Shown: positions 31,516 through 55,175, counted from the whole stretch's first letter. The stretch is 63,957 nt of DNA, filler included, from Guillardia theta CCMP2712 (GCF_000315625.1; 3 parts of 3 records of this genome joined end to end with filler, not necessarily neighbours in it), one strand, 5' to 3'. Translations and numbers: made by a program. Notes: generated by a model not told the origin, from the sequence alone.

Positions 31516-33171
31516 NNNNNNNNNNNNNNNNNNNNNNNNNNNNNNNNNNNNNNNNNNNNGGAGGTGGTGGTGGTGGTGGTGGTGGAAGAGGAGGAGGTGG
31601 TGAAGGAGGAGGAGGTGGTGGTGATGGTGGAGACAGAAGAAGCAGCTGCTATAGAAGCTGGTGCCATTAGGAGGCAGATCGCAAACGGAAGGCCTTTACC
31701 TCTGAGTGCCGAACGAACACGATGCTCGCGATCGGGGCTTTGTCAGCCGAAGTTTCAGACATTCACATCTCTCCTCCTCTTCTCCTCCCAACTTCCTCCT
31801 CCTACATCACCAATTACTCTTCCTCTTCCTCTTCCTCTTCCTCTTTCTATTCCTGCTGCTGCTGCTGCTGCTGCTTCTCCTCCTCTTCCTCCTCCTACTT
31901 CTCCCAGTCCTCCTCATTCCCTGTCTCCATCTCCCAGTTGTCCTCATCACCACATCACATAATCAATATTCCCTAACTGCTTCAACTGCTCTTTCTGCCT
32001 CTGCTGCTGCTGTGACTCCTCTTCACCACCGTCCCCCCCCCGGCTTTCTGCTGCTGCTCGCGCTGCTGCTCTCCCTCTCTCCTCCTCCTCCGCTCACCGT
32101 CGTTGTCCTCTGTGTTGACTTCAGCATCTCCATGATGTTCTCGGGAGTCCCCCCCTGATCCCCAGGTCAGACGGTGAGCAGCAAACAACAAAAATCAACT
32201 CACATTGCTCAGCGCCTCCCTCTACGACCTCGCCTCGTCTTCCCACTCCTCTTCAATCGTCTCATCCATCGCATTCTTCCAAGCCACCTTCGGCTCATCC
32301 AGCTCCTCGTTCTCTGTTCCCTCCCGCTCCTCCTCTTTTTCCTACAGTCCCCACCGTCTGTCAACTAAACTTCCACATGCTTCCACCCTCACCGCAACTG
32401 CAGGCAATTCCAGCAAGGAGGGCTTCATCAGTGCCACGTGCAGCTGGAGCGCTTTCTCCACGTCCTCTTTGCTCTCCTGCTGAGCAGCTACCGGCACTTC
32501 TTCTATATTCCTGCTTTCCTTCCTCCTGTTTCTCTTCCTCTTCCTCTCCATCCTTTTCCTCCTCATACTCTTTAATCCATCAATACGGCTATTCGATCCC
32601 CCGGCCTCCCCACTCCGACTCTTCCTGCCTGTCTGCTCGCTGCTTGAGGAAGATGATGTTCTTCGTGATCTGCACGAGGATGAGGGGAGAGGGAAAGAAT
32701 CGCACGAGATACCTCGCATTCGATGTTCCTGCTTTTCACGTCCTCCTCGAAGGGCAGAACTACAATACATCGTTCCGACGAGTCTACGAACTGTACTTCG
32801 TTCGTGCTAATATCTTTCTCTTCCATTCCACCCTCAGCAGCTTTGAGAGCAAAGGATCCTCCCTTTCGGCCCTCCCTCATCCCTCTTCTGATCCCGNNNN
32901 NNNNNNNNNNNNNNNNNNNNNNNNNNNNNNNNNNNNNNNNNNNNNNNNNNNNNNNNNNNNNNNNNNNNNNNNNNNNNNNNNNNNNNNNNNNNNNNNNNNN
33001 NNNNNNNNNNNNNNNNNNNNNNNNNNNNNNNNNNNNNNNNNNNNNNNNNNNNNNNNNNNNNNNNNNNNNNNNNNNNNNNNNNNNNNNNNNNNNNNNNNNN
33101 NNNNNNNNNNNNNNNNNNNNNNNNNNNNNNNNNNNGACCTTTGAGTAAAACTATTTGGCGCGCAAAAAACC

Positions 33172-36068
33172 ATGTCGTCGTCGTCGTCGTCGCAGCAGCT
33201 GCAGGCGGCGAGGAGGGAGGAGAGCGATTCCGTGGAAGAGCAGCGAGAAACCAAACGACTCAAGGTGAGTACCGAGCTCAGCAACGACGCCCATTCAACG
33301 ACTGCAGCGGAGGTAGAGCGGGCGCGGGCGGAGCTGAATGAGGCTCGCGCAAGCAAGGACCAAGAGCAGATAGACGCAGCAAAGGAAGAGCTTGCTCGGG
33401 CGGAGCTCAAGGCAGAGGTAGAGCTTGCGCGGGCGAATGTAAAAGCGGCGCGCACAAGCAAGGACAGCGCGCAGATAGCCGGAGCAAAGGAAGAGCTGGC
33501 GCGGGCGGAGCTCAAGGCGGCGCGCGCAAGCAAGGACCACGAGCAGATAACCGCAGCAGAGGTAGAGCTTGCGCGGGCGGAGCTCAAGGCAGAGGTAGAG
33601 CTTGCGCGGGCGGAGCTCAAGGTGGCGCTCGCAAGCAAGGACCACGAGCNNNNNNNNNNNNNNNNNNNNNNNNNNNNNNNNNNNNNNNNNNNNNNNNNNN
33701 NNNNNNNNNNNNNNNNNNNNNNNNNNNNNNNNNNNNNNNNNNNNNNNNNAAGGACGAAGCGGAGATAGCAATGGCGAAGGCAAATGTATCAAGGGCGGAG
33801 CTGAAGGCAGAGGTAGGTCTCTTGAGGGCGCAGCTGAATGCAGTGCTCGCAAGCAATCACGAAGAAACGATAACTCAATCAAAGCTAGCCTTGCGCATCG
33901 CTGAGTCANNNNNNNNNNNNNNNNNNNNNNNNNNNNNNNNNNNNNNNNNNNNNNNNNNNNNNNNNNNNNNNNNNNNNNNNNNNNNNNNNNNNNNNNNNNN
34001 NNNNNNNNNNNNNNNNNNNNNNNNNNNNNNNNNNNNNNNNNNNNNNNNNNNTTCTGCAGTCATGCATGCAGTCTCGAGAAATATCCTTGAGTTGGAGAAA
34101 TACTGAAGGCTGCGATGTGCATAGAAAAATCGCTGGGATCAAAAGCTAGGTCGTTGAGCGAATCAAACCAATCGACAAAGTAGTAACCGATAGTGCGGAT
34201 CGAGCAGCTTGTACAGTCTCATGCATGATTGAGGCTGCTCGGGAAGCGGAAAATCGTTGTGTGCGGCAGACTACTTCGTACGAAACCCAAAGACCTCACG
34301 ATATTGCTTGTTTGGATACACCCAGGAACAGGAATTATATCTTCAGGTGGACAGTATCTCGCAGCTCATCAATGTAGCAATCGATCTAGACCTCCAAGCG
34401 TGTGATCAGAAGCTTGCATTTGATAAACCAGATGAGTGCAAGGTGAATGTTTTGGAAATTGATATTCTGGAATCCAGTTGGAATATTCTTGGTGCACTCG
34501 GATACCTGTTTGGGAAGACTGAAACTGTAGCCAAGGTGACGTTGCAGCATGCAAAGAAGTGGACAAAGGACAAGGACTTGTGGCTGCTCGTCGATGAAGC
34601 GATACCGGGGTATCAGGATACCACCGACCTTGTAAACCCAATCGCTCGACTGGTCTTCTTCAAACGTATTCTTCGTAATGCAGGCTTTAACACTATCATG
34701 CTGGGGACAAACACTCTGGTGATGAATTTCAACAAAGCTTTGCGACAGACCGACAACAGCCGAGGTCGGAACCTAGAGCATTTAGTGTGTATCACCCATC
34801 GAGCGCTTCCTCCGATGATTTTACAATCTGAAAAGCAGCATGCTTTGCTCAGGAGTTTGTTTGGGGAGGAGCAGTGCAGCTTGTTTCTCGACAACGTTAA
34901 CCCATGGCTTTGCAATCAGATGTTGAAGGGCTTCAAGGGCGCCACGGAAGAGATAAAAGACCGCGCAGATTTGTTTCGAGATCTGGCTGGTCCAGTGTTG
35001 GCAGAAAGGCGTAAAGAAAAGAAGAATCTCAGCGATGCATCGTTGTATTGTATGTTTCAGATTGCAACGCACGATGCCATTTCCCAGGCACACATCATGC
35101 AAGGGTTCGGTCTCTTGAACATCTGGCCACAAGGCGAAGTCCCTGCACGTGGTAGTCCGGGGTCAATCATTGATCTTGATCGGCGTGATGACAAGATTTA
35201 CATGATGAATACAGATATCCACAACATATCCTGCAGGTTTCCTCCGGCCTGGGCCGATCCCATCACTACAGGGATTTGCGCTGGTGGCGGAAGACCTTTT
35301 CGCAATTTAGCATCAGGGCTCGAGGTGTTGAGGAGGATTCACCAAGATACTGTCAAGCCCAGGGAGGATCCCACAGCAGTAGATGCAATGCGTAGAGGCG
35401 GGAATGTTCTCGAATCGTTTGGGGCAGTCGTCCTTATGTTGACAAGCTGGGCCAAACCAGAGGACATTCTATCGACTCTCAGCTATCATTGTGGACGAGA
35501 AGTGAAGAGCACAGTGACGCAGGTGCTTGCTGCCGTGGATGACAAGGAGGCTGCAGAGCAGTTCCGGCAAGTTTTGACGAGATGTTTGTGTAATCTGATT
35601 CCCCTTCGTGACGATGAAAGTAACATACTTGACGGAGAAGTTTTCGGCTACTACATTCGTTGCATGGATAAGCGCGAACGAGACGGATGCTTTTCTGGCC
35701 CTGTCTTCGGTCCTGATAGGAGAAGAATGAAGGGTGCAGCAGAGTTCAAGAACTGGAGAGTGTCGGTCAATTCATCTGATCTCAAGTGTTTTGTGGAAAA
35801 GCTGTCCAAGAATGGAGAGGACCTCCTTCTCTTCATGGCGCCAGCCTTTGGAGATTTTAAGTACGAGTGGATCTTACCACGATTAGGGGTTTCTGATTGG
35901 TTGGTTCTGCATTGGACAATTGATGGGGCGCATCTAGATTGGCGTACTTTCCACCATGTAGTCCAAGACGGTGAGAAAAGATACAGAATTTTGGTGCTTA
36001 TGGAGGTCGGGTTATCAACGAAACCTTTTTGTGAACCGTCGATGCGCCAAGATCAGATTGATGCCTAG
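33172..36068 (+). CDS. Repeat header + P-loop NTPase + PD-(D/E)xK nuclease (Crinkler-like), copy 1, gapped
   Basis: Same gene as copies 2 and 3, but interrupted by N-runs and with small indels at ~34050-34250 next to a gap. Confidence 0.7.
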
Positions 36069-36609
36069 CATGGGTTACATGGGCTGGAGAATCATGTATA
36101 ACATGGATGCAGACATCAAACACCAGAGCAGGGATGCCGCAGCCTCAGTCACGGTGAAGTTGAGCTAGTGTCAAAAATACTGATCGAGCTGGATAAAGCC
36201 CGTTGCGGATACTAAAGGAGACCGTATGACAGACACGTGGCTTTCAGTTTCAATCTTGACAGCTAGCTCCTTATTCATGCAGGCAAAGTGTGACGACCTT
36301 GAAACCCCATGTCGATTTTTGAACGAATGAAGATAGCAGACATCGTTGGGAGCACCCATTGACATTCATGATTCCATCTAGGCAGTCTTTGCAGCAGGAC
36401 AGTCATACTGCTTGACTCAGAAGTCGGACATAGTGTTGCTGATCACAACATGCCGATGGCTGACCTCACTCTGTTTCGATTGACCTGTTCAGCACGTATA
36501 TTGACAACTTACGTAGAGGAACTGATGATTCCGATCATCAGTAGGCGTCATTTTCAAGTTTCATATTCTGGATAGCAAACTGCTTGAGATTACGAGAGTA
36601 AAGCCTGAT

Positions 36610-36885
36610 CTTTCTTTTCAACAGATCAGGAGAGCAGAGAACGAGTCGACGCGATCTTGAAAATCGTATTTCCATATGTGCCAACACTGCGAACGCGTGC
36701 CGTGGTTGAAGTTGGGATGGCATCAGTGATATACCACGAACAATTTATTCGAGAGATGATGCCAAGGAATCAACCCTTGTTTCGAACTACTCTTTTGTTG
36801 CAACCTGGTTTTGTACAGACCCTCAGGAAGCATGTTACGATAGAAGGTCATGATAAACGGCAAAATGTATATCTCCAGATGTGTG
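36610..36885 (+). mobile_element. Crypton-like recombinase fragment, copy 1
   Basis: The frame reads ERVDAILKIVFPYVPTLRTRAVVEVGMASVIYHEQFIREMMPRNQPLFRTTLL. This matches the post-catalytic Crypton segment (compare LAQIVYHLDRLKDMFPSHHFLW in the 2258-4868 gene). Confidence 0.5.
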
Positions 36886-37199
36886 CCGAATCTCTCTCTG
36901 TCTCTGTGTCTTTCCCTCTCTCTCTGTCTGTCTCTGTCTGTCTCTGTCTCTGTCTGTGTCTCTGTGTGTCTCTGTCTGTCTATCTGTCTGTCTGTCTGTC
37001 TCTCGATCTCTCTTGCTCTCTCTTGCTCTCTCTCTCTCTCTGTCTGCCTCTCTGTCTCGGTCTCTGTCTCTGTCTCTCTGTCTCCCTCCCTCCCTGCATC
37101 CATCCCTGCCTCTGTCTCTGTCTCTGTCTCTGTCTCTGTCTCTGTCTCTGTCTCTGTCTCTGTCTCTGTCTCTGTCTCTGTCTCTGTCTCTGTATCTCT

Positions 37200-37961
37200 C
37201 TCTCTCTCAGCTCCTTGCCGCTCTCATTGCTGGGGTTCCTCGCCATGGCGCTAGTTTACAGCCCCATCGCCTCCTCATCAACCTCATCAAGCTTGGTAGC
37301 GTCGAGGTTACAGTGACCTGTGCCTTCGGCATCAACAACGATTCCTTTAGCCTTGAGTATCCGTTAGCTCCTCCCTCCCTCCCTCCCTCCCTCCCTGTTT
37401 CCCTTGCCCATCCTCCCACCTCTCCTTGCTTGGCATAGGCTATGAGAGATGTCTGCTTCCTGGGCAACCTCAGCACCTGCACAATCAGCATGGCGACGGC
37501 GGACGAGTAGACGGCATGACCGAAGACGGAAATGCAACCGAGGAAGAGGCTCTCGTTGCCAGCCTTCCTACTCTCAACGGTCACAAGCAGGGAGTGGAGA
37601 GAGGAGGAGGAAGGAGGAAGGCTGGGAGGGGTGGAGGAGAGGATGGGAGGGCGAGGAAGGGGGTTGAAGGAGATGGGGGAAAGGAGGAGATGGAGAGGTC
37701 TCTTACCTCCTCCGTTCCATTTCTGCTTCAACTCCCTGCGCAAGCTCTACTACCACTCTCTCCGCGTATGCTCGAAGCGTCTGTGTGCCATGTCAGCAGC
37801 TGATCCTTCTCCTCCTGCACCAACTTTGCCATGCCCTGCAGCGATGTAGTCTGCCAGGGACGCGTATCCTGAATAGCAGAAGAAAGAGAGAAAGGGAGGA
37901 AGAGGAGATGAGGAGAGTCGGGACGGAGCATGATGAAGATGAAGATGATGATGAAGATGAA

Positions 37962-38017
<56 letters not shown>

Positions 38018-40560
38018 GGAGGAGGAGGAGGAGGAGGAGGAGGAAACCAGACACAGAACATGTGAGTTGCTGATAGAGCGTTGCTGTGCTCTTTTCTTTT
38101 TCAGCAAAGGCCTTTCTCGCCTCCTCCTCCATAGTGCCATCGTAGATTCCAGCCAACACCGTCTACCCCTCAGTCAGCCAATGCACCTCCACGAGGAGAT
38201 CAGAGGAGGAGGCGGGGAAGGAGAAGGAGGAGAGGGAAGATGAGAAGAGAAAGAAGACGGGGAAGTAGGCGGGGAAGAAGGAGGTGAACAATGAACGATC
38301 GGAAGGGAAGGGCCTGAGAGAATGATTGAGTGGAAAAAGAATGTTGAAACTTGGAGTTGATGATCAACAAGAAGAAACATCAGCATGGAAAGGAAGGGGA
38401 CAGGATGAGGAGGAGAAGGAGGAGAGGGAGGAGGAGGAGGAGAGGGAGGAGGAGGAAGGGTGGGGGGGAGGAGGAGGGGCGTACAGGCTTCGGAGCTCCC
38501 ATGAGCCATGCTGTCTCCAGTCAGCGGCCTGTCCTTCCCTCATCATCCTCTACCTCACTGCAGGTCCTCGGTCACCTGCAGACGAGGAGAAGGAGATGCC
38601 GTGCGGAGCACGGGAGGCTGCGCAGAGGGTTGAGAACCACCTCCTACTTCCTTGTCAGCGCTCCCATCCCACGACATGAAGCAGAGAAAGAGATAGGGTG
38701 TGATTTGGACGAGGAGAAGGAGGAGGAGGAGGAGGAGGAGGGAAGAGTTAGGAGAGGAAAGAGAAAAGATTGGACACGAATCGAGGATGGGAAGGAGACG
38801 AGGAGATGAAAGAGGGGGGTGGGGAGGTGGGGGCGGGAAGGAGGAGATGGAACGATGGAACGATACCTCGAGGAGGAAGCCTTGATCCTGCCCTCCGCCG
38901 TCAGGATGCGAGCTAGATCTTCCTCTGGGGAATTCCCTTGCGGTTGGTCGGTCTGCAGAGCATGATGGGTCAAGGAGAGGAGAAAGGAAGAAGAGGATGG
39001 AAGGAGGAAGAGGAGCGAGGAGAAATGGGAGAGAGGAGGGAAAGGAGGAGACGGTAGTTCCGAGCAGCAGCTGCAGCTGCTGCAGCTGCACGCTAGGAGA
39101 ATATAGTGAAAAGAAGAGAGAAAAGGAGGAGGAGGAGGAGGAGGAGGAGGAGGTGGAGGAGGAGGNNNNNNNNNNNNNNNNNNNNNNNNNNNNNNNNNNN
39201 NNNNNNNNNNNNNNNNNNNNNNNNNNNNNNNNNNNNNNNNNNNNNNNNNNNNNNNNNNNNNNNNNNNNNNNNNNAGACAGAAGAAGCAGCTGCAGCTGGT
39301 GCCATTAGGAGGCAGATCGCGAACGGAAGGCCTTTACCTCTGAGTGCCGAACGAACACGATGCTCGCGATCGGGGCTTTGTCAGCCGAAGTTTCAGACAT
39401 TCACATCTCTCCTCCTCGACCACCTATTCTCCTCCCAACTTCCTCCTCCTACATCACCAATTCGTCTTCCTCTTCCTCTTCCTCTTCCTCTTCCTCTTTC
39501 TATTCCTGCTGCTGCTGCTGCTGCTGCTTCTCCTCCTCTTCCTCCTCCTACTTCTCCCAGTCCTCCTTATCCCCTGTCTCCATCTCCCAGTTGTCCTCAT
39601 CACCACATCACATAATCAATATTCCCTAACTGCTTCAACTGCTCTTTCTGCCTCTGCTGCTGCTGTGACTCCTCTTCACCACCGTGCAACCCCCCCCCGG
39701 CTTTCTGCTGCTGCTCGCGCTGCTGCTCTCCCTCTCTCCTCCTCCTCCGCTCACCGTCGTTGTCCTCTGTGTTGACTTCAGCATCTCCATGATGTTCTCG
39801 GGAGTCCCCCCCTGATCCCCAGGTCAGACGGTGAGCAGCAAACAACAAAAATCAACTCACATTGCTCAGCGCCTCCCTCTACGACCTCGCCTCGTCTTCC
39901 CACTCCTCTTCAATCGTCTCATCCATCGCATTCTTCCAAGCCACCTTCGGCTCATCCAGCTCCTCGTTCTCTGTTCCCTCCCGCTCCTCCTCTTTTTCCT
40001 ACAGTCCCCACCGTCTGTCAACTAAACTTCCACATGCTTCCACCCTCACCGCAACTGCAGGCAATTCCAGCAAGGAGGGCTTCATCAGTGCCACGTGCAG
40101 CTGGAGCGCTTTCTCCACGTCCTCTTTGCTCTCCTGCTGAGCAGCTACCGGCACTTCTTCTATATTCCTGCTTTCCTTCCTCCTGTTTCTCTTCCTCTTC
40201 CTCTCCATCCTTTTCCTCCTCATACTCTTTAATCCATCAATACGGCTATTCGATCCCCCGGCCTCCCCACTCCGACTTTTCCTGCCTGTCTGCTCGCTGC
40301 TTGAGGAAGATGATGTTCTTCGTGATCTGCACGAGGATGAGGGGAGAGGGAAAGAATCGCACGAGATACCTCGCATTCGATGTTCCTGCTTTTCACGTCC
40401 TCCTCGATGGGCAGAACTACAATACATCGTTCCGACGAGTCTACGAACTGTACTTCGTTCGTGCTAATATCTTTCTCTTCCATTCCACCCTCAGCAGCTT
40501 TGAGAGCAAAGGATCCTCCCTTTCGGCCCTCCCTCATCCCTCTTCTGATCCCGTGAAGGC
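37200..40560 (-). pseudogene. Possible degraded multi-exon gene, divergent from the NTPase gene and repeated in each unit (also ~45110-48500, partial 31620-32896)
   Basis: Non-repetitive, coding-like blocks lie between SSR-filled intervals (MEEKDISTNEVQF.., ESKEDVEKALQLHVALMKPSLL.., LAGIYDGTMEEEARKAF.., [23 protein letters not shown]). Some contain stops, and I do not recognise the family. Confidence 0.3.
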
Positions 40561-40824
40561 TCCTGGCGTCCTGCCCGGCGTCAGTGTTGTTCCCACCTGT
40601 TCCCAGCCTTGTCCCCCGCCTCCTCCGTTTCGGACAAGATCCTTTATTGACTGAGATACTTTGTTGGAGTAGCGGTTTTCGCTGTCCTCGGTTTCCTAGT
40701 ATTTTGTTGGTGTAGCATTTTTCGCTGCCTTCTCCGTTTCCGGATGTCTGGTTGAGGCGGGTTTGTAGGGTTTATCCTCGTCCTGTGAGACCTTTGAGTA
40801 AAACTATTTGGCGCGCAAAAAACC

Positions 40825-43800
40825 ATGTCGTCGTCGCAGCAGCTGCAGGCGGCGAGGAGGGAGGAGAGCGATTCCGTGGAAGAGCAGCGAGAAACAAAAA
40901 GACTCCAGGTGAGTACCGAGCTCAGCAACGACGCCCATTCAACGACTGCAGCGGAGGTAGAGCGGGCGCGGGCGGAGCTGAATGAGGCTCGCGCAAGCAA
41001 TGACCAAGAGCAGATAAACGCAGCAAAGCAAGAGCTTGCGCGGGCGCAGCTGAAGGCAGAGGTAGGGCATGCGCGGGCGAATGTAGACGCGGCGCTCGCA
41101 AGCAAGGACAGAGCGCAGATAGCCGGAGCAAAGGAAGAGCTGGCGCGGGCGGAGCTCAAGGCGGCGCGCGCAAGCAAGGACCACGAGCAGATAACCGCAG
41201 CAGAGGCAGAGCTTGCGCAGGCGCAGCTGAAGGCAGAGGTAGAGCTTGCGCGGGCGGAGCTCAAGGCAGAGGTAGAGCTTGCTCGGGCGGAGCTCAAGGC
41301 GGCTCGCGCAAGCAAGGACCACGAGCAGATAACCGCAGCAAAGGAAGAGCTTGCTCGGGCGGAGTTCAAGGCAGAGGTAGGGCTTGCGCGGGCGGAGCTC
41401 AAGGCAGATGTAGAGCTGGCTCGGGCGGAGCTCAAGGCGGCTCGCGCAAGCAAGGACCACGAGCAGATAACCGCAGCAGAGGCAGAGCTTGCGCGGGCGG
41501 AGCTCAAGGCAGAGGTAGAGCTGGCGCGGGCGGAGCTGAAGGCGGCTCGCGCAAGCAAGGACCACGAGCAGATAAACGCAGCAGAGGTACAGCTTGCGCA
41601 GGCGCAGCTGAAGGCGGCGCTCGCAAGCAAGGACGAAGCGGAGATAACAATGGCGACGGAAAATGTATCAAGGGCGGAGCTGAAGGCAGAGGTAGGTCTC
41701 TTGAGGGCGCAGCTGAATGCAGTGCTCGCAAGCAATCACGAAGAAACGATAACTCAATCAAAGCTAGCCTTGCGCATCGCTGAGTCATCGCTTGCAAGCA
41801 TCCGTGCATCTACACCTCTGCGGGTGGATGTTCTAGGTAATCTCTCTTTGCTGAGCAAATGTGCGTCCATGGCGAGCATTGTGTGAAAGTGTATCTTCAA
41901 CAACGTGTGAGAAGCAGCTCACTGAACTATTTCTTGCAGTCATGCATGCAGTCTCTGAGAAATATCCCTTTGAGTTGGAGAAAATACTTGAAGGCCTGCG
42001 GATGTGCATAGAAAAATCGCTGGGATCAAAAGCTAGGTCGTTGAGCGAATCAAACCCAATCGACAAAGTAGTAACCGATAGTGCGGATCGAGCAGCTTGT
42101 ACAGTCTCATGCATGATTGAGGCCTGCTCGGGAAGCGGAAAATCGTTGTGTGCGGCAGACTACTTCGTACGAAACCCAAAGACCTCACGATATTGCTTGT
42201 TTGGATACACCCAGGAACAGGAATTATATCTTCAGGTGGACAGTATCTCGCAGCTCATCAATGTAGCAATCGATCTAGACCTCCAAGCGTGTGATCAGAA
42301 GCTTGCATTTGATAAACCAGATGAGTGCAAGGTGAATGTTTTGGATATTGATCTTCTGGAATCCAGCTGGAATATTCTTGGTGCACTCGGATACCTGTTT
42401 GGGAAGACTGAAACTGTAGCCAAGGTGACGTTGCAGCATGCAAAGAAGTGGACAAAGGACAAGGACTTGTGGCTGCTCGTCGATGAAGCGATACCGGGGT
42501 ATCAGGATACCACCGACCTTGTAAACCCAATCGCTCGACTGGTCTTCTTCAAACGTATTCTTCGTGATGCAGGCTTTAATACTATCATGCTGGGGACAAA
42601 CACTCTGGTGATGAATTTCAACAAAGCTTTGCGACAGACCGACAACAGCCGAGGTCGGAACCCAGAGCATTTAGTGTGTATCACCCATCGAGCGCTTCCT
42701 CCGATGATTTTACAGTCTGAAAAGCAGCATGCTTTGCTCAGGAGTTTGTTTGGGGAGGAGCAGTGCAGCTTGTTTCTCGACAACGTTAACCCATGGCTTT
42801 GCAATCAGATGTTGAAGGGCTTCAAGGGCGCCACGGAAGAGATAAAAGACCGCGCAGATTTGTTTCGAGATCTGGCTGGTCCAGTGTTGGCAGAAAGACG
42901 TAAAGAAAAGAAGAATCTCAGCGATGCATCGTTGTATTGTATGTTTCAGATTGCAACGCACGATGCCATTTCCCAGGCACACATCATGCAAGGGTTCGGT
43001 CTCTTGAACATCTGGCCACAAGGCGAAGTCCCTGCACGTGGTAGTCCGGGGTCAATCATTGATCTTGATCGGCGTGATGACAAGATTTACATGATGAATA
43101 CAGATATCCACAACATATCCTGCAGGTTTCCTCCGGCCTGGGCCGATCCCATCACTACAGGGATTTGCGCTGGTGGCGGAAGACCTTTTCGCAATTTAGC
43201 ATCAGGGCTCGAGGTGTTGAGGAGGATTCACCAAGATACTGTCAAGCCCAGGGAGGATCCCACAGCAGTTGATGCAATGCGTAGAGACGGGAATGTTCTC
43301 GAATCGTTTGGGGCAGTCGTCCTTATGTTGACAAGCTGGGCCAAACCAGAGGACATTCTATCGACTCTCAGCTATCATTGTGGACGAGAAGTGAAGAGCA
43401 CAGTGACGCAGGTGCTTGCTGCCGTGGATGACAAGGAGGCTGCAGAGCAGTTCCGGCAAGTTTTGACGAGATGTTTGTGTAATCTGATTCCCCTTCGTGA
43501 CGATGAAAGTAACATGCTTGACGGAGAAGTTTTCGGCTACTACATTCGTTGCATGGATAAGCGCGAACGAGACGGATGCTTTTCTGGCCCTGTCTTCGGT
43601 CCTGATAGGAGAAGAATGAAGGGTGCAGCAGAGTTCAAGAACTGGAGAGTGTCGGTCAATTCATCTGATCTCAAGTGTTTTGTGGAAAAGCTGTCCAAGA
43701 ATGGAGAGGACCTCCTTCTCTTCATGGCGCCAGCCTTTGGAGATTTTAAGTACGAGTGGATCTTACCACGATTAGGGGTTTCTGATTGGTTGGTTCTGCA

Positions 43801-43957
43801 TTGGACAATTGATGGGGCGCATCTAGATTGGCGTACTTTCCACCATGTAGTCCAAGACGGTGAGAAAAGATACAGAATTTTGGTGCTTATGGAGGTCGGG
43901 TTATCAACGAAACCTTTTTGTGAACCGTCGATGCGCCAAGATCAGATTGATGCCTAG
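40825..43957 (+). CDS. Repeat header + P-loop NTPase + PD-(D/E)xK nuclease (Crinkler-like), copy 2; exons 40825-41836 and 41940-43957, ~1009 aa
   Basis: A 103-nt intron GTAATC...ACTGAAC..TTTCTTGCAG (41837-41939) fuses the two ORFs in frame. Motifs are Walker A IEACSGSGKS, Walker B LWLLVDE, a sensor-like IMLGTN, RDGNVLES, and nuclease-like R-ERDG...AEFKNW. Confidence 0.8.
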
Positions 43958-44534
43958 CATGGGTTACGTGGGCTGGAGAATCATGTATAACATGGATGCA
44001 GACATCAAACACCAGAGCAGGGATGCCGCAGCCTCAGTCACGGTGAAGTTGAGCCAGTGTCAAAAATACTCATCGAGCTGGATAAAGCCTGTCGCGGATA
44101 CTAAAGGAGACCGTATGACAGGCGCGTGGCTTTCAGTTTCAATCTTGGACAGCTAGCTCCTCAAGTTGCCTACACCTAGTTCATGACGTGCTGGATATAT
44201 TCATGCAGGCAAGGTGTGACGACCTTGAAACCCCATGTCGATTTTTGAACGAATGAAGATAGCAGACATCGTTGGGAGCACCCATTGACATTCATGATTC
44301 CATCTAGGCAGTCTTTGCAGCAGGACAGTCATACTGCTTGACTCAGAAGTCGGACATAGTGTTGCTGATCACAACATGCCGATGGCTGACCTCACTCTGT
44401 TTCGATTGACCTGTTCAGCACGTATATTGACAACTTACGTAGAGGAACTGATGATTCCGATCATCAGTAGGCGTCATCTCAAGTTTCATATTCTGGATAG
44501 CAAACTGCTTGAGATTACGAGAGTAAAGCCTGAT

Positions 44535-44810
44535 CTTTCTTTTCAACAGATAAGGAGAGCAGAGAACGAGTCAACGCGATCTTGAAAATCGTATTTCCAT
44601 ATGTGCCAACACTGCGAACGCATGCCGTGGTTGGAGTTGGGATGGCATCAGTGATATACCACGAACGATTTATTCGAGAGATGATGCCAAGGAATCAACC
44701 CTTGTTTCGAACTACTCTTTTGTTGCAACCTGGTTTTGTACAGCCCCTTGGGAAGCATGTTACGATAGAAGGTCATGATAAACGGCAAAATGCATATCTC
44801 CAGATGTGTA
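44535..44810 (+). mobile_element. Crypton-like recombinase fragment, copy 2
   Basis: KIVFPYVPTLRTHAVVGVGMASVIYHERFIREMMPRNQPLF. Confidence 0.5.
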
Positions 44811-44903
44811 CTGAATCTCTCTCTGTCTCTGTGTCTTTCCCTCTCTCTCTGTCTGTCTCTGTCTGTCTCTGTCTGTCTGTCTCTGTCTGTCTGTGTCTGT
44901 CTG

Positions 44904-44959
<56 letters not shown>

Positions 44960-45853
44960 GATCTCTGTCTCTGTCTGCCTCTCGGTCTCGGTCTCTGTCT
45001 CTGTCTCTGTCTCTGTCTCTCTGTCTCCCTCCCTCCCTGCATCCATCCCTCCGTCTGTCTCTGTCTCTGTTCTCTGTCTCTCTCTCTGTCTGTCTCTCTC
45101 TCTGTCTCTCTCTCAGCTCCTTGCCGCTCTCATTGCTGGGGTTCCTCGCCATGGCGCTAGTTTACAGCCCCATCGCCTCCTCATCAACCTCATCAAGCTT
45201 GGTAGCGTCGAGGTTACACTGACCTGTGCCTTCGGCAGCAACAACGACTCCTTTAGCCTTGAGTGTCCGTTAGCTCCTCCCTCCCTCCCTCCCTCCCTTC
45301 CTCCCTGTCTCCCTTGCCCATCCTCCCACCTCTCCTTGCTTGGCATAGGCTATGAGAGATGTCTGCTTCCTGGGCAACCTCAGCACCTGCACAATCAGCA
45401 TGGCGACGGCGGACGAGTAGACGGCATGACCGAAGACGGAAATGCAACCGAGGAAGAGGCTCTCGTTGCCAGCCTTCCTACTCTCAACGGTCACAAGCAG
45501 GGAGTGGAGAGAGGAGGAGGAAGGAGGAAGGCTGGGAGGGGTGGAGGAGAGGATGGGAGGGCGAGGAAGGGGGTTGAAGGAGATGGGGAAAAGAAGGAGA
45601 TGGAGAGGTCTCTTACCTCCTCCGTTCCATTTCTGCTTCAACTCCCTGCGCAAGCTCTACTATCACTCTCTCCGCGTATGCTCGAAGCGTCTGTGTGCCA
45701 TGTCAGCAGCTGATCCTTCTCCTCCTGCACCAACTTTGCCATGCCCTGCAGCGATGTAGTCTGCCAGGGACGCGTATCCTGAACAGCAGAAGAAAGAGAG
45801 AAAGGGAGGAAGAAGAGATGAGGAGAGTCGGGACGGAGCATGATGAAGAGGAA

Positions 45854-45954
<101 letters not shown>

Positions 45955-48766
45955 GGAGGAGGAGGAGGAGGAAACCAGACACAGAACATGTGAGTTGCTG
46001 ATAGAGCGTTGCTGTGCTCTTTTCTTTTTCAGCAAAGGCCTTTCTCACCTCCTCCTCCATAGTGCCATCGTAGATTCCAGCCAACACCGTCTACCCCTCA
46101 GTCAGCCAATGCACCTCCACGAGGAGATCAGAGGAGGAGGCGGGGAAGGAGAAGGAGGAGAGGGAAGATGAGAAGAGAAAGAAGACGGGGAAGAAGGCGG
46201 GGAAGAAGGAGGCGAACAATGAACGATCGGAAGGGAAGGGCCTGAGAGAATGATTGAGTGGAAAAAGAATGTTGAAACTTGGAGTTGATGATCAACAAGA
46301 AGAAACATCAGCATGGAAAGGAAGGGGACAGGATGAGGAGGAGAAGGAGGAGAAAGAGGAGAAGGAGGAGGAGGAGAGGGAGGAGGAGGAAGGGAGGGGG
46401 GGAGGAGGGGCGTACAGGCTTCGGAGCTCCCATGAGCCATGCTGTCTCCAGTCAGCGGCCTGTCCTTCCCTCATCATCCTCTACCTCACTGCAGGTCCTC
46501 GGTCACCTGCAGACGAGGAGAAGGAGATGCCGTGCGGAGCACGGGAGGCTGCGCAGAGGGTTGAGAACCACCTCCTACTTCCTTGTCAGCGCTCCCATCC
46601 CACGACATGAAGCAGAGAAAGAGATAGGGTGTGATTTGGACGAGGAGAAGGAGGAGGAGGAGGAGGAGGAGGGAAGAGTTAGGAGAGGAAAGAGAAAAGA
46701 TTGGACACGAATCGAGGATGGGAAGGAGACGAGGAGATGAAAGAGGGGGGTGGGGAGGTGGGGGCGGGAAGGAGGAGATGGAACGATGTAACAATACCTC
46801 GAGGAGGAAGCCTTGATCCTGCCCTCCGCCGTCAGGATGCGAGCTAGATCTTCCTCTGGTGAATTCCCTTGCGGTTGGTCGGTCTGCAGAGCATGATGGG
46901 TCAAGGAGAGGAGAAAGGAAGAAGAGGATGGAAGGAGGAAGAGGAGCGAGGAGAAATGGGAGAGAGGAGGGAAAGGAGGAGACGGTAGTTCCGAGCAGCA
47001 GCAGCTGCTGCTGCAGCTGCACGCTAGGAGAATATAGTGAAAAGAAGAGAGAAAAGGAGGAGGAGGAGGAGGAGGTGGTGGTGGTGGTGGTGGAAGAGGA
47101 NNNNNNNNNNNNNNNNNNNNNNNNNNNNNNNNNNNNNNNNNNNNNNNNNNNNNNNNNNNNNNNNNNNNNNNNNNNNNNNNNNNNNNNNNNNNNNNNNNNN
47201 ATGGTGGAGACAGAAGAAGCAGCTGCTATAGAAGCTGGTGCCATTAGGAGGCAGATCGCGAACGGAAGGCCTTTACCTCTGAGTGCCGAACGAACACGAT
47301 GCTCGCGATCGGGGCTTTGTCAGCCGAAGTTTCAGACATTCACATCTCTCCTCCTCGACCACCTATTCCCCTCCCAACTTCCTGCATCCTACATCACCAT
47401 TCCGCTTCCTCTTCCTCTTCCTCTTCCTCTTCCTCTTTCTATTCCTGCTGCTGCTGCTGCTGCTGCTTCTCCTCCTCTTCCTCCTCCTACTTCTCCCAGT
47501 CCTCCTCATTCCCTGTCTCCATCTCCCAGTTGTCCTCATCACCACATCACATAATCAATATTCCCTAACTGCTTCAACTGCTCTTTCTGCCTCTGCTGCT
47601 GCTGTGACTCCTCTTCACCACCGTGCAACCCCCCCCCGGCTTTCTGCTGCTGCTCGCGCTGCTGCTCTCCCTCTCTCCTCCTCCTCCGCTCACCGTCGTT
47701 GTCCTCTGTGTTGACTTCAGCATTTCCATGATGTTCTCGGGAGTCCCCCCCTGATCCCCAGGTCAGACGGTGAGCAGCAAACAACAAAAATCAACTCACA
47801 TTGCTCAGCGCCTCCCTCTACGACCTCGCCTCGTCTTCCCACTCCTCTTCAATCGTCTCATCCACCGCATTCTTCCAAGCCACCTTCGGCTCATCCAGCT
47901 CCTCGTTCTCTGTTCCCTCCCGCTCCTCCTCTTTTTCCTACAGTCCCCACCGTCTGTCAACTAAACTTCCACATGCTTCCACCCTCACCGCAACTGCAGG
48001 CAATTCCAGCAAGGAGGGCTTCATCAGTGCCACGTGCAGCTGGAGCGCTTTCTCCACGTCCTCTTTGCTCTCCTGCTGAGCAGCTACCGGCACTTCTTCT
48101 ATATTCCTGCTTTCCTTCCTCCTGTTTCTCTTCCTCTTCCTCTCCATCCTTTTCCTCCTCATACTCTTTAATCCATCAATACGGCTATTCGATCCCCCGG
48201 CCTCCCCACTCCGACTCTTCCTGCCTGTCTGCTCGCTGCTTGAGGAAGATGATGTTCTTCGTGATCTGCACGAGGATGAGGGGAGAGGGAAAGAATCGCA
48301 CGAGATACCTCGCATTCGATGTTCCTGCTTTTCACGTCCTCCTCGAAGGGCAGAACTACAATACATCGCTCCGACGAGTCTACGAACTGTACTTCGTTCG
48401 TGCTAATATCTTTCTCTTCCATTCCACCCTCAGCAGCTTTGAGAGCAAAGGATCCTCCCTTTCGGCCCTCCCTCATCCCTCTTCTGATCCCGTGAAGGCT
48501 CCTGGCGTCCTGCCCGGCGTCAGTGTTGTTCCCACCTGTTCCCAGCCTTGTCCCCCGCCTCCTCCGTTTCGGACAAGATCTTTTGTTGGCCTGACTGATA
48601 CTTTGTTGGAGTAGCGGTTTTCGCTGTCCTCGGTTTCCTAGTATTTTGTTGGTGTAGCATTTTTCGCTGCCTCCTCCGTTTCCGGATGTCTGGTTGAGGC
48701 GGGTTTGTAGGGTTTATCCTCGTCCTGTGAGACCTTTGAGTAAAACTATTTGGCGCGCAAAAAACC

Positions 48767-51665
48767 ATGTCGTCGTCGTCGTCGTCGCAGCAGCTGCAGG
48801 CGGCGAGGAGGGAGGAGAGCGATTCCGTGGAAGAGCAGCGAGAAACCAAACGACTCAAGGCGAGTACCGAGCTCAGCAACGACGCCCATTCAACGACTGC
48901 AGCGGAGGTAGAGCGGGCGCGGGCGGAGCTGAATGAGGCTCGCGCAAGCAATGACCAAGAGCAGATAGACGCAGCAAAGGAAGAGCTTGCGCGGGCGCAG
49001 CTGAAGGCAGAGGTAGGGCATGCGCGGGCGAATGTAGACGCGGCGCTCGCAAGCAAGGACAGAGCGCAGATAGCCGGAGCAAAGGAAGAGCTGGCGCGGG
49101 CGGAGCTCAAGGCGGCGCGCGCAAGCAAGGACCACGAGCAGATAACCGCAGCAGAGGCAGAGCTTGCGCAGGCGCAGCTGAAGGCAGAGGTAGAGCTTGC
49201 GCGGGCGGAGCTCAAGGCAGAGGTAGAGCTGGCGCGGGCGGAGCTCAAGGTGGCTCGCGCAAGCAAGGACCACGAGCAGATAGCCGGAGCAGAGGTAGAG
49301 CTTGCGCAGGCGCAGCTGAAGGCGGCGCTCGCAAGCAAGGACGAAGCGGAGATAGCAATGGCGAAGGCAAATGTATCAAGGGCGGAGCTGAAGGCAGAGG
49401 TAGGTCTCTTGAGGGCGCAGCTGAATGCAGTGCTCGCAAGCAATCACGAAGAAACGATAACTCAATCAAAGCTAGCCTTGCGCATCGCTGAGTCATCGCT
49501 TGCAAGCATCCGTGCATCTACACCTCTGCGGGTGGATGTTCTAGGTAATCTCTCTTTGCTGAGCAAATGTGCGTCCATGGCGAGCATTGTGTGAAAGTGT
49601 ATCTTCAACAACGTGTGAGAAGCAGCTCACTGAACTATTTCTTGCAGTCATGCATGCAGTCTCTGAGAAATATCCCTTTGAGTTGGAGAAAATACTTGAA
49701 GGCCTGCGGATGTGCATAGAAAAATCGCTGGGATCAAAAGCTAGGTCGTTGAGCGAATCAAACCCAATCGACAAAGTAGTAACCGATAGTGCGGATCGAG
49801 CAGCTTGTACAGTCTCATGCATGATTGAGGCCTGCTCGGGAAGCGGAAAATCGTTGTGTGCGGCAGACTACTTCGTACGAAACCCAAAGACCTCACGATA
49901 TTGCTTGTTTGGGTACACCCAGGAACAGGAATTATATCTTCAGGTGGACAGTATCTCGCAGCTCATCAATGTAGCAATCGATCTAGACCTCCAAGCGTGT
50001 GATCAGAAGCTTGCATTTGATAAACCAGATGAGTGCAAGGTGAATGTTTTGGATATTGATCTTCTGGAATCCAGTTGGAATATTCTTGGTGCACTCGGAT
50101 ACCTGTTTGGGAAGACTGAAACTGTAGCCAAGGTGACGTTGCAGCATGCAAAGAAGTGGACAAAGGACAAGGACTTGTGGCTGCTCGTCGATGAAGCGAT
50201 ACCGGGGTATCAGGATACCACCGACCTTGTAAACCCAATCGCTCGACTGGTCTTCTTCAAACGTATTCTTCGTGATGCAGGCTTTAACACTATCATGCTG
50301 GGGACAAACACTCTGGTGATGAATTTCAACAAAGCTTTGCGACAGACCGACAACAGCCGAGGTCGGAACCCAGAGCATTTAGTGTGTATCACCCATCGAG
50401 CGCTTCCTCCGATGATTTTACAGTCTGAAAAGCAGCATGCTTTGCTCAGGAGTTTGTTTGGGGAGGAGCAGTGCAGCTTGTTTCTCGACAACGTTAACCC
50501 ATGGCTTTGCAATCAGATGTTGAAGGGCTTCAAGGGCGCCACGGAAGAGAAAAAAGACCGCGCAGATTTGTTTCGAGATCTGGCTGGTCCAGTGTTGGCA
50601 GAAAGACGTAAAGAAAAGAAGAATCTCAGCGATGCATCGTTGTATTGTATGTTTCAGATTGCAACGCACGATGCCATTTCCCAGGCACACATCATGCAAG
50701 GGTTCGGTCTCTTGAACATCTGGCCACAAGGCGAAGTCCCTGCACGTGGTAGTCCGGGGTCAATCATTGATCTTGATCGGCGTGATGACAAGATTTACAT
50801 GATGAATACAGATATCCACAACATATCCTGCAGGTTTCCTCCGGCCTGGGCCGATCCCATCACTACAGGGATTTGCGCTGGTGGCGGAAGACCTTTTCGC
50901 AATTTAGCATCAGGGCTCGAGGTGTTGAGGAGGATTCACCAAGATACTGTCAAGCCCAGGGAGGATCCCACAGCAGTAGATGCAATGCGTAGAGACGGGA
51001 ATGTTCTCGAATCGTTTGGGGCAGTCGTCCTTATGTTGACAAGCTGGGCCAAACCAGAGGACATTCTATCGACTCTCAGCTATCATTGTGGACGAGAAGT
51101 GAAGAGCACAGTGACGCAGGTGCTTGCTGCCGTGGATGACAAGGAGGCTGCAGAGCAGTTCCGGCAAGTTTTGACGAGATGTTTGTGTAATCTGATTCCC
51201 CTTCGTGACGATGAAAGTAACATACTTGACGGAGAAGTTTTCGGCTACTACATTCGTTGCATGGATAAGCGCGAACGAGACGGATGCTTTTCTGGCCCTG
51301 TCTTCGGTCCTGATAGGAGAAGAATGAAGGGTGCAGCAGAGTTCAAGAACTGGAGAGTGTCGGTCAATTCGTCTGATCTCAAGGGTTTTGTGGAAAAGCT
51401 GTCCAAGAATGGAGAGGACCTCCTTCTCTTCATGGCGCCAGCCTTTGGAGATTTTAAGTACGAGTGGATCTTACCACGATTAGGGGTTTCTAATTGGTTG
51501 GTTCTGCATTGGACAATTGATGGGGCGCATCTAGATTGGCGTACTTTCCACCATGTAGTCCAAGACGGTGAGAAAAGATACAGAATTTTGGTGCTTATGG
51601 AGGTCGGGTTATCAACGAAACCTTTTTGTGAACCGTCGATGCGCCAAGATCAGATTGATGCCTAG
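48767..51665 (+). CDS. Repeat header + P-loop NTPase + PD-(D/E)xK nuclease (Crinkler-like), copy 3; exons 48767-49544 and 49648-51665, ~931 aa
   Basis: Same 103-nt intron (49545-49647) and same motifs as copy 2, with a shorter header. Confidence 0.8.
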
Positions 51666-52219
51666 CATGGGTTACATGGGCTGGAGAATCATGTATAACA
51701 TGGATGCAGACATCAAACACCAGAGCAGGGATGCCGCAGCCTCAGTCACGGTGAAGTTGAGCTAGTGTCAAAAATACTGATCGAGCTGGATAAAGCCCGT
51801 TGCGGATACTAAAGGAGACCGTATGACAGACACGTGGCTTTCAGTTTCAATCTTGGACAGCTAGCTCCTCAAGTCGCCTACACCTAGTTCATGACGTGCT
51901 TGACGACCTTGAAACCCCATGTCGATTTTTGAACGAATGAAGATAGCAGACATCGTTGGGAGCACCCATTGACATTCATGATTCCATCTAGGCAGTCTTT
52001 GCAGCAGGACAGTCATACTGCTTGACTCAGAAGTCGGACATAGTGTTGCTGATCACAACATGCCGATGGCTGACCTCACTCTGTTTCGATTGACCTGTTC
52101 AGCACGTATATTGACAACTTACGTAGAGGAACTGATGATTCCGATCATCAGTAGGCGTCATTTCAAGTTTCATATTCTGGATAGCAAACTGCTTGAGATT
52201 ACGAGAGTAAAGCCTGATC

Positions 52220-52495
52220 TTTCTTCTCAACAGATAAGGAGAGCAGAGAACGAGTCAACGCGATCTTGAAAATCGTATTTCCATATGTGCCAACACTGCG
52301 AACGCGTGCCGTGGTTGGAGTTGGGATGGCATCAGTGATATACCACGAACAATTTATTCGAGAGATGATGCCAAGGAATCAACCCTTGTTTCGGACTACA
52401 CTTTTGTTGCAACCTGGTTTTGTACAGACCCTTGGGAAGCATGTCACGATAGAAGGTCATGATAAACGGCAAAATGTATATCTCCAGATGTGTGC
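52220..52495 (+). mobile_element. Crypton-like recombinase fragment, copy 3
   Basis: KIVFPYVPTLRTRAVVGVGMASVIYHEQFIREMMPRNQPLF. Confidence 0.5.

Positions 52496-55012: not shown

Positions 55013-55175
<163 letters not shown>

Follow-up and report, generated by a model that had tools for sequence, protein, structure and literature searches.

We propose that three genes in the nuclear DNA of the cryptophyte Guillardia theta CCMP2712 probably represent a nuclear cryptophyte family of conflict-type, NTP-gated nucleases, each made of a header, an AAA+/STAND NTPase and a Mrr-like nuclease, a family whose amplification here has left an array of at least three copies lying head to tail. The array lies within the window (the whole stretch of 63,957 nt that was analysed, filler included). 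The initial annotation had read it as a three-copy tandem array in an apparently algal genome; the source bears out the algal origin, and self-BLAST recovered a repeated unit of 7.7-7.9 kb, present at least three times, with 95-99% identity between units 1-3, whose repeated stretches were seen at 31624-39163, 39275-47094 and 47201-52590. Each unit carries one two-exon gene; these correspond to GUITHDRAFT_104014, GUITHDRAFT_104016 and GUITHDRAFT_104018 (717, 1009 and 931 aa), currently annotated as hypothetical proteins, and their lengths match the spliced model. The features of the array are as follows:

31624-39165, plus strand: tandem unit 1, 95-98% identical to units 2 and 3 by self-BLAST
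33172-36068, plus strand: gene copy 1, GUITHDRAFT_104014, modelled at 717 aa, interrupted by N gaps and 1-nt deletions
39275-47100, plus strand: tandem unit 2, the complete reference unit (gene of ~3.1 kb and spacer of ~4.7 kb rich in microsatellites)
39879-40483, minus strand: small GenBank gene model of 105 aa, divergently oriented, ~340 nt upstream of the main gene
40825-41836, plus strand: copy 2 exon 1, encoding the 337-aa repeat header
41837-41939, plus strand: copy 2 intron, 103 nt, GT..AG, phase 1, spliced out in transcript contigs
41940-43957, plus strand: copy 2 exon 2, encoding the 671-aa body, with stop codon
47201-52590, plus strand: tandem unit 3; likeness to the other units stops at 52590, from where the flank is unique
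48767-51665, plus strand: gene copy 3, GUITHDRAFT_104018, 931 aa, two exons
48767-49544, plus strand: copy 3 exon 1, encoding a shorter header of 259 aa
49545-49647, plus strand: copy 3 intron
49648-51665, plus strand: copy 3 exon 2

Copy number was derived from a gapped, Sanger-era scaffold. The left end of unit 1 adjoins a scaffold gap, a run of at least 8.4 kb of N directly upstream of the sequenced piece, and three copies is therefore a minimum, because this run may hide more; the gene downstream of the array encodes an MFS transporter. Two further gaps (39166-39274 and 47101-47200) fall inside a (GGA)n microsatellite between genes, which every unit has at the equivalent place, and touch no gene, and an additional gap (32897-33135) ends 37 nt 5′ of the copy 1 ATG. 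Apart from the gene and its microsatellite spacer, the tandem unit contains no transposase, integrase, reverse transcriptase or terminal repeats, and a search within it for element ends or a linked transposase found no other recognisable gene and no repeats besides the unit itself. Nothing in the unit points to mobility.

The two-exon structure with a 103-nt intron, which had been predicted from the DNA alone, is confirmed by RNA: transcript contigs from three runs of three separate studies (X6, X9 and X14) skip exactly these 103 nt across 41837-41939, joining header to body, and X9 contigs include the unspliced form too. The intron is in phase 1 and so one exon 1 base and two exon 2 bases together form a Val codon; exons 1 and 2 of copy 2 give the 1009-aa GUITHDRAFT_104016. 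Between copies 2 and 3, exon 2 differs by nine substitutions, five synonymous and four nonsynonymous. Copy 1 is more damaged as written. Its gap at 33650-33749 lies within the header repeats and, taken as a literal 100 N, loses the frame, whereas copies 2 and 3 have 59 nt at this place, a length that would preserve it; its second gap (33909-34051, 143 N) corresponds to 143 nt of copies 2 and 3 that take in the 3′ end of exon 1, the 5′ splice site and the bulk of the intron. Directly after this gap, at 34076-34235, nine single-base deletions relative to copies 2 and 3 break the frame; these look like poor sequence near a contig edge. Copy 1 also carries a D449G substitution at a nearly invariant Asp. 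The array is taken to hold at least three expressed copies; transcript contigs carry additional combinations of the copy variants.

The header forms a separate N-terminal domain on its own exon, ahead of the enzymatic part. In copy 2 its 337 aa, rich in Ala, Glu, Leu, Arg and Lys, fall into repeats of 11 and 24 residues (periods of 33, 72, 105 and 138 nt in the DNA), with neither heptad nor hendecad hydrophobic periodicity. Paralogue P0003 has a homologous header (35% identity over 302 aa) and, at the equivalent header/body junction, an intron. The N-terminus is hydrophilic (mean hydropathy -1.48 over the first 30 aa), indicating no signal peptide, and no 19-aa window exceeds 0.94 in hydropathy, indicating no membrane segment; the protein is therefore presumably intracellular. 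No LxLFLAK, HVLVxxP or PF20147 match was found in the header, and its repeats matched no described header, so that the earlier description of an unrecognised repeat header, lacking a signal peptide and an LFLAK or ubiquitin-like element, stands.

Body residues are numbered here on the 671-aa product of 41942-43954, for which the AlphaFold model has a pLDDT of 81 and a pTM of 0.82. All the motifs first picked out from the sequence (Walker A, Walker B, MLGTN, DGNVLES, RERDG and AEFKNW) are found in this body, where the modules and motifs are placed as follows:

41969-43321, plus strand: AAA+/STAND-like NTPase module and following helical region, body residues ~10-460, from Foldseek and VIA
42122-42145, plus strand: Walker A, ACSGSGKS, body 61-68, kept in all full-length paralogues, its GK invariant in the distant set A2
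42467-42490, plus strand: Walker B, LLVDEA (hydrophobic strand, then DE), within body 176-183, conserved
42587-42655, plus strand: MLGTN (body 216-220), with sensor-1-like Thr/Asn after strand 4, and an invariant Ser-Arg
43424-43954, plus strand: C-terminal PD-(D/E)xK, Mrr-like domain, body 495-671, domain model pLDDT 84

The proposal of a P-loop NTPase is upheld by structural matches to AAA+/STAND proteins with both Foldseek and VIA: Walker A, Walker B, a polar sensor-1 and an ASCE fold with a helical lid are all present, and the fold neighbours include Apaf-1, NLRC4, CED-4, NLRs, ORC/Cdc6, MuB and TnsC, with DnaC and RuvB-like proteins also among the matches. Foldseek on the body returned Apaf-1 at E 4e-4 and NLRC4 at E 6e-4; VIA returned WRR4A at Z 9.2 over residues 23-458, MuB and ORC at Z 7.9 and TnsC at Z 6.8-7.5. 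The NLR alignments reach residue ~460, spanning the helical and WHD-equivalent region without singling out an HTH, and the helical region may include a winged helix; the DGNVLES motif lies within residues 447-455. Invariant columns comprise L217, G218, T219 and R237, which suggests to us a sensor-1-like role for the TN pair and an arginine-finger-like role for the SR pair, the latter favouring a classical AAA+ protein over a STAND protein.

For the C-terminal domain, the evidence supports a restriction-endonuclease (REase) fold of the Mrr-like PD-(D/E)xK type, from matches none of which is strong by itself (Z no higher than 4.6, Foldseek E of at least 0.03). About three-quarters of the top 50 VIA rows are PD-(D/E)xK proteins (Z 3-4.6), the Atlas gives Mrr_cat clusters at TM 0.41-0.54, and the domain model is in keeping with the alpha-beta-beta-beta-alpha-beta core of that fold, in which D opens strand 2 and (D/E)xK lies on strand 3. 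D544, E564 and K566 (D50, E70 and K72 of the domain model) are the candidates for catalysis, from RERDG at body 541-545 and AEFKNW within 562-568. D50 lies ahead of strand 51-58, with E70 and K72 at the end of strand 63-71, so that D-(19 residues)-E-x-K is set on the hairpin of these two strands, flanked by helices. In an alignment of 39 sequences D50 and K72 are invariant and E70 is at least 90% conserved, which sustains the initial call of a restriction-fold nuclease with a D..ExK motif. Paralogues P0006, P0015 and P0016 have lost the triad Glu or Lys, and therefore an active nuclease need not apply to every copy.

Paralogues at 33-61% identity occur in G. theta, Hanusia phi and Rhodomonas salina, each genome holding many divergent ones. 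A search of 1.84 billion cluster representatives gave only 77 proteins at E 0.001 or better, and the 24 matches at E 1e-30 or better are apparently cryptophyte sequences. Against 27 distant eukaryotic proteins (~650-800 aa) hhalign gave a probability of 100, with E 1.9e-40 over 515 columns, and inside this match the D...ExK triad is conserved from the cryptophyte paralogues to the distant relatives; a match of the whole body to an oomycete-dominated Atlas cluster (TM 0.59 over 550 residues) was also found. By these comparisons, proteins sharing this predicted body form a broader family with a sparse distribution in eukaryotes, of which the cryptophyte members are one part. The distant relatives have weak AAA_22 and TniB Pfam matches (the latter in one protein), and one of them bears a ubiquitin-type header. 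We also observed that one distant relative, P0052, is encoded 1 kb from a gene for a 1584-aa reverse transcriptase/RNase H.

The initial annotation had described the genes as Crinkler/RHS-type. The layout on which this was based holds, for the Crinkler-RHS (CR) proteins (Zhang et al. 2016, via PMC5289972) likewise run from a header through a P-loop NTPase and a helical region to a C-terminal REase with D...ExK; NTPase, HTH and REase form their commonest C-terminus (PMC5289972). CR proteins are also multi-copy, with lineage-specific expansion, and are known in free-living eukaryotes, some with alpha-helical rather than ubiquitin-like headers (PMC5289972). Homology to recognised Crinkler or RHS proteins is not established: PF20147 (Crinkler) and PF07999 (RHSP) gave no HMM match in the query, the paralogues or the 27 distant relatives, even at E 10, and no sequence model connected the protein to any Pfam, NCBIfam, PADLOC or PDB entry; text searches for proteins that might link the two groups also came back empty. 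The Guillardia protein further differs in having no signal peptide, LxLFLAK or HVLVxxP, and in its 11/24-residue tandem-repeat header, for which we found no match among described headers. The link to Crinkler/RHSP comes only from ESM language-model similarity, with feature neighbours bearing PF20147 (0.91) or PF07999 (0.84). Thus the NTPase-REase architecture is shared, and CR family membership is unproven because no sequence model connects the protein to PF20147 or PF07999. The hydrophilic N-terminus and the lack of a PF20147 match do not fit an oomycete Crinkler (CRN) effector in the strict sense, which has a signal peptide and a Ubl/LxLFLAK header (PF20147) with HVLVxxP at its end.

Other systems show partial likeness. 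In the comparison with STAND/AAA+ immune NTPases that have nuclease effectors (bacterial Avs3/Avs4 and NLR-type proteins), the NTPase-plus-helical module aligns with NB-ARC/NACHT proteins over ~270 residues (Z 8-9), the Mrr-like nuclease of Avs3/Avs4 matches the Guillardia nuclease domain (Z 3.3-3.9), and PF22722, a REase family associated with NACHT, is present in Atlas neighbours; however, the nuclease is N-terminal in Avs3/Avs4 and C-terminal here, the Guillardia protein has no TPR, LRR or WD sensor array, PADLOC was blank, and the invariant SR that follows sensor 1 points to the arginine finger of a classical AAA+ protein more than to a STAND arrangement. TnsC/MuB/TniB ATPases with a TnsA-type REase share the AAA+ fold (Z 6.8-7.9) and the PD-(D/E)xK partner, but in Guillardia both are fused in one spliced eukaryotic gene with a header, in a unit without transposase or element ends. 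Mrr-type endonucleases (PF04471) are the nearest structural neighbours of the C-terminal domain (TM 0.41-0.54, Z up to 4.6), without a sequence match, and the Guillardia domain adds a C-terminal beta-sheet (domain residues 120-157) to the minimal Mrr core.

In the conflict nuclease that we propose, the NTPase would time the cutting of nucleic acid by binding or hydrolysing nucleotide, probably along with oligomerisation, and the variable header could provide targeting, partner binding or self-association. We infer a role in genetic conflict, for example in protection from viruses or mobile DNA or as a kind of toxin, because patchy distribution, many paralogues, tandem amplification and variable header length fit such a role and do not fit housekeeping. 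A bolder idea, which we regard as rather unlikely, is that these proteins act as cell-autonomous immune nucleases in cryptophytes and, here and there, in other protists, as a eukaryotic counterpart of the bacterial Avs/NLR-nuclease systems with a sensing header, an oligomerising switch and a Mrr-like effector: the repeat header, which changes fast, would detect or bind an invader or else restrain the protein, and the AAA+/STAND-like switch would oligomerise once triggered, the Mrr-like domain then degrading nucleic acid. If so, an arms race against algal viruses would have left its mark in the tandem amplification and in the varying header lengths.

Considering other origins for the array, the NTPase and REase could be a relic or active Tn7/Mu-like module of a selfish or transposon-derived element, and the array its self-amplification. 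The structural matches to MuB and TnsC, the TniB match in one distant relative and the reverse-transcriptase neighbour of P0052 speak for this, as does the derivation of CR NTPase-REase modules from transposons summarised in PMC5289972 under the heading 'From Transposons to Toxins'. However, we hold it to be improbable: the unit has neither the enzymes nor the terminal repeats of such an element, its copies are strictly head to tail at one locus, as unequal crossing-over would give, P0003 stands single, flanked by ordinary genes, and TnsC and MuB fit no better than NLRs, Apaf-1 and ORC. Very improbable, too, is a housekeeping factor of DNA metabolism, such as a replication/repair AAA+ protein with an attached nuclease, that was simply duplicated; the fold matches include ORC/Cdc6, DnaC and RuvB-like proteins and expression is good (depth ~350 for the X9 contig), but so narrow a distribution (just 77 proteins, the closest 24 apparently cryptophyte), the many divergent paralogues per genome, the variable header length and the loss of triad residues in some paralogues argue against it.

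It is also very improbable that the array is partly an assembly artefact, with alleles, or a single copy expanded through scaffolding over repeats, posing as three genes. An N gap does recur at the identical microsatellite in every unit, and copy 1 has two internal gaps with low-quality sequence beside one; but the copies differ in header length (337 versus 259 aa) and by 9-11 exon 2 substitutions, unit-to-unit joins lie on either side of copies 2 and 3, the additional variant combinations in transcript contigs are what several expressed copies would give, and the upstream N run suggests under- rather than over-assembly. The low-complexity 105-aa gene model, a putative gene with no family match, recurs once per unit, three times at the same unit position.

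By self-comparison, the piece at 31560-55276 holds a unit of 7.7-7.9 kb repeated head-to-tail at 95-99% identity, with one long plus-strand gene per unit, the remainder being a spacer of about 4.7 kb rich in the microsatellites (TCTGTC)n, (ATG)n and (GGA)n. No Rfam family and no tRNA were found in the spacer, the overlapping ORFs on both of its strands are microsatellite or low-complexity translations without a family match, and no mobility gene was found in the unit. Blocks of strong strand skew, with many spurious overlapping ORFs, arise from extended tracts of (TCTGTC)n/(TC)n and (ATG)n at 36891-37208, 37930-38017 and 54900-55270, which lie in the spacer or at the right-hand end of the piece. 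The array, its right flank and the five runs of N inside the piece are laid out as follows:

31624-39163, tandem unit 1, gene on plus strand
39275-47094, tandem unit 2, gene on plus strand
47201-52590, tandem unit 3, gene on plus strand, similarity ending at 52590
32222-32826, minus strand, 105-aa GenBank gene model of unit 1
39879-40483, minus strand, 105-aa GenBank gene model of unit 2
47818-48422, minus strand, 105-aa GenBank gene model of unit 3
53612-54685, plus strand, MFS_1 transporter gene (PF07690, E 6e-32), first exon(s), marking the unique sequence to the right of the array
32897-33135, 239 N, ending 37 nt upstream of the copy 1 start codon
33650-33749, 100 N in the header repeats of copy 1, counterpart in copies 2 and 3 of 59 nt
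33909-34051, 143 N in copy 1, standing for exactly 143 nt of copies 2 and 3
39166-39274, N gap in the spacer, in the same (GGA)n tract as 47101-47200
47101-47200, N gap in the spacer, in the same (GGA)n tract as 39166-39274

The 90%-identity cluster of the ORF contains GUITHDRAFT_104014 (copy 1, 717 aa), GUITHDRAFT_104016 (copy 2, 1009 aa) and GUITHDRAFT_104018 (copy 3, 931 aa), which share one 1.05-Mb scaffold of Guillardia theta CCMP2712 and whose GenBank coordinates coincide with the window. The algal genome suspected in the initial annotation is thus that of a cryptophyte, and the array genes are among its annotated genes. They are already in GenBank as unnamed hypothetical proteins, and no mention of their locus tags was found in the literature searched.

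In copy 2 an ATG ORF at 40825-41886 overlaps a 698-codon ORF at 41861-43957; the initial annotation had proposed a two-exon gene, in which a 103-nt intron joins a header to an NTPase-nuclease region, and had named RNA-seq junctions across 41837-41939 as the check. This intron starts with GT, ends with AG, lies in phase 1 and links both ORF frames, and the copy 3 intron (49545-49647) is identical to it. Among public reads and contigs aligned to 41650-44100, contigs of three sequencing runs from three separate studies (X6, X9 and X14) omit exactly the 103 nt (reported as 41834>41938, ‘cut +2’), the shorter arm of the X6 contig at the splice joint measuring 185 nt; header and body (the 671 aa from exon 2) are therefore parts of one spliced transcript, as had been proposed. 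Run X9 also gave an unspliced contig of lower depth, and a Logan contig of genomic type follows the window DNA colinearly through the intron. The annotated lengths are those of the spliced models (337+1+671 = 1009 and 259+1+671 = 931). One X14 contig skips an extra 52 nt with GT..AG ends (window 42520-42573), in exon 2 downstream of Walker B; since 52 is not divisible by 3, the skip would shift the frame, and either a minor unproductive isoform or a quirk of assembly may explain it.

Exon 2 differs between copies 2 and 3 by nine substitutions (five synonymous and four nonsynonymous), their headers are 337 aa and 259 aa long, respectively, copies 1 and 2 are 11 substitutions apart, one of them D449G at an almost invariant Asp, and transcript contigs hold further combinations of the inter-copy variants. 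These findings point to several expressed copies and speak against a collapsed single gene. The paralogue GUITHDRAFT_113579 is a single gene flanked by ordinary genes (for a HhH-GPD glycosylase and an acyl-CoA dehydrogenase), and we thus regard the array as a local amplification. It may exceed three copies, since directly upstream of the piece (before 31560) the scaffold has an N run of at least 8.4 kb, which starts at the unit position shared by the inter-unit gaps. Copy 1 is possibly a pseudogene: its frame is broken by nine 1-nt deletions in a 160-nt stretch (34076-34235) right after the gap at 33909-34051, a gap whose 143-nt counterpart takes in the exon 1 end, the 5′ splice site and the greater part of the intron. 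Past 34235 copy 1 is open and 99% identical to the other copies, and we read the deletions as probable poor sequence at a contig edge. In the copy 1 header, the gap at 33650-33749, taken as a literal 100 N, puts the right fragment (codons from 33750) out of frame with the left ORF; the 59-nt counterpart of copies 2 and 3 would keep the frame, so that a header ORF continuous across the gap is plausible, if unproven.

Structure prediction and motif conservation support a putative P-loop NTPase and restriction-fold nuclease behind the header, although no match above threshold came from searches of Pfam, NCBIfam, PADLOC and PDB sequences with body, header or family profile. The AlphaFold model of the body, built from 17 homologues, is confident (pLDDT 81, pTM 0.82), and its Foldseek matches in the PDB are to Apaf-1 (E 4e-4, probability 0.98) and also to NLRC4, CED-4, ORC/Cdc6, RdrA and TnsC. 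In an independent all-against-all structural alignment the best Z among the matches listed was 9.2, to the NB-ARC of WRR4A (270 residues, model 23-458), followed by 8.0-8.3 to NLRP2, NLRP9, ZAR1 and Dark, 7.9 to ORC, MuB and Cdc6, and 7.5 to TnsC. Together with Walker A (ACSGSGKS, body residues 61-68) and Walker B (LLVDE, within 176-183), which are kept in all full-length paralogues, these AAA+/STAND fold matches support the P-loop NTPase of the initial annotation. L217-G218-T219 and R237 show no variation and N220 and S236 very little; in the model L217-N220 and S236-R237 lie just past strand 4 and before strand 5, and they may represent the sensor 1 and arginine finger of AAA+ proteins.

The C-terminal 177 body residues were modelled separately on a 39-sequence alignment (pLDDT 84). 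In that alignment D544 and K566 of the candidate triad are invariant and E564 is at least 90% conserved, the Glu or Lys being replaced in a few paralogues; in the model the triad sits on a beta-hairpin, with the Asp before the first strand and ExK ending the second, a predicted placement which is the canonical PD-(D/E)xK arrangement. Nearly all ESM Atlas neighbours of the domain are Mrr_cat (PF04471) or NA-iREase1 clusters (TM 0.41-0.54 over about 100 residues). Foldseek against the PDB with the domain alone found nothing significant (best E 0.027, a nucleoside phosphorylase, which we judged spurious), and in an exhaustive structural search of 48,161 chains Z was low, at most 4.6; however, by our reading PD-(D/E)xK proteins make up about three quarters of the top 50 of those chains, and include the LlaBIII nuclease domain, AF1548, Can2, AspBHI, Avs3, FokI, BamHI, Bax1, NotI, NucS, MspJI, Cap4, Cfr10I, BglII, HamA and CdiA-CT. 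The conserved D...ExK and these structural matches thus favour the restriction-fold nuclease that had been proposed, with the Foldseek null and the low Z weighing against it.

The header, the product of exon 1, is rich in Ala (25%), Glu (15%), Leu, Arg and Lys and consists of 11-residue and 24-residue units. It is 35% identical to the GUITHDRAFT_113579 header over 302 residues (E 4e-7 with compositional adjustment); that paralogue also has an intron at the header/body junction, and analogous repeat headers occur in other paralogues. By composition only, the header is a helical-type repeat, and as a Fourier test found no heptad or hendecad amphipathicity, we do not call it a coiled coil. Its match to T3SS_basalb_I (24.6 bits, below the cut-off of 32.4) was discarded as a coiled or low-complexity artefact. 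Each unit has one 105-aa gene model, which is divergently oriented to the main gene and starts some 340 nt away from the ATG of that gene. The model is low-complexity and without a family match; a role as immunity partner was not supported, nothing similar lying beside GUITHDRAFT_113579.

Searched exhaustively against 1.84 billion cluster representatives, the family profile found only 77 proteins at E <=0.001. Of these, 24 reach E <=1e-30 and are of cryptophyte type, the named ones belonging to G. theta, Hanusia phi and Rhodomonas salina, and a second tier comprises proteins of about 650-800 aa, mostly from unlabelled transcriptome or metagenome contigs and one from the chrysophyte Paraphysomonas. 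The second tier aligns with the cryptophyte profile over 515 columns (probability 100, E 1.9e-40), spanning Walker A/B, GTN, SR, DG..LE and the D...ExK(N) triad; weak Pfam matches (E up to 10) are to AAA_22 in 13 of 27 second-tier proteins and to TniB in two. One of them (P0086) has an N-terminal ubiquitin domain, and Pfam scans of the long N-termini of the distant relatives gave no Crinkler header. No viral relatives were found when IMG/VR was scanned with the family profile. An Atlas cluster of unnamed 676-aa proteins, dominated by oomycetes, can be superposed on the whole-body model (TM 0.59, 550 residues).

In the account given in PMC5289972, reporting Zhang et al. 2016, the predominant C-terminus of Crinkler-RHS-type (CR) proteins is NTPase + HTH + REase, their headers can be unrelated alpha-helical domains, and free-living eukaryotes are among their hosts; the G. 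theta layout matches the header + NTPase + REase described there. In a language-model feature search, the neighbours included Mucoromycota clusters with the Crinkler header PF20147 (0.91, 191-196 features in common), and a ‘Crinkler (CRN) family’ cluster with the RHSP domain PF07999 lay at 0.84. However, no HMM-level link to PF20147 or PF07999 was found in the query, its paralogues or 27 distant relatives, and word-index searches with the alignment of those relatives or with P0086 returned self-matches only and no named Crinkler proteins. The signal peptide, Ubl/LxLFLAK header and HVLVxxP of oomycete Crinklers are all absent from the G. theta protein, whose header is hydrophilic, without a membrane segment or a PF20147 match, in agreement with the initial annotation, which had seen no signal peptide or LFLAK/ubiquitin-like header. 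Its term ‘Crinkler-like’ is therefore apt as an architectural analogy, with homology unproven: the protein probably works like CR NTPase-REase proteins, is probably related to them and is a candidate member of that group.

The general architecture has been on record since 2016, and GenBank already lists the genes. They extend a known design and are not a new kind. The analysis offers a testable domain assignment for three hypothetical proteins, the G. theta paralogues and the Hanusia phi and Rhodomonas salina relatives, and a kind of header, built of tandem 11/24-residue repeats and encoded by its own exon, which differs from the ubiquitin-like Crinkler header. If, as we infer, the array genes serve in conflict or defence, a free-living photosynthetic protist joins the organisms that amplify NTPase-nuclease conflict proteins. 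Were the nuclease active and NTP-gated, the family would provide a tractable model for Crinkler/RHS-type modules outside pathogens, and would bear on eukaryotic reuse of AAA+/STAND-plus-nuclease logic from bacterial immunity.

On one metagenomic contig (L003) a 1584-aa RVT_1/RNase_H retroelement protein (5747-10501, minus strand) is found some 1 kb downstream of P0052, a distant relative; this single case is reminiscent of the link between trypanosome RHS genes and retroelements. Although G. theta is a marine culture strain, freshwater/lake metagenomes (X15, X17 and X20) hold contigs with 11-63% of the gene’s sampled words; these could reflect a relative, contamination or index sharing.
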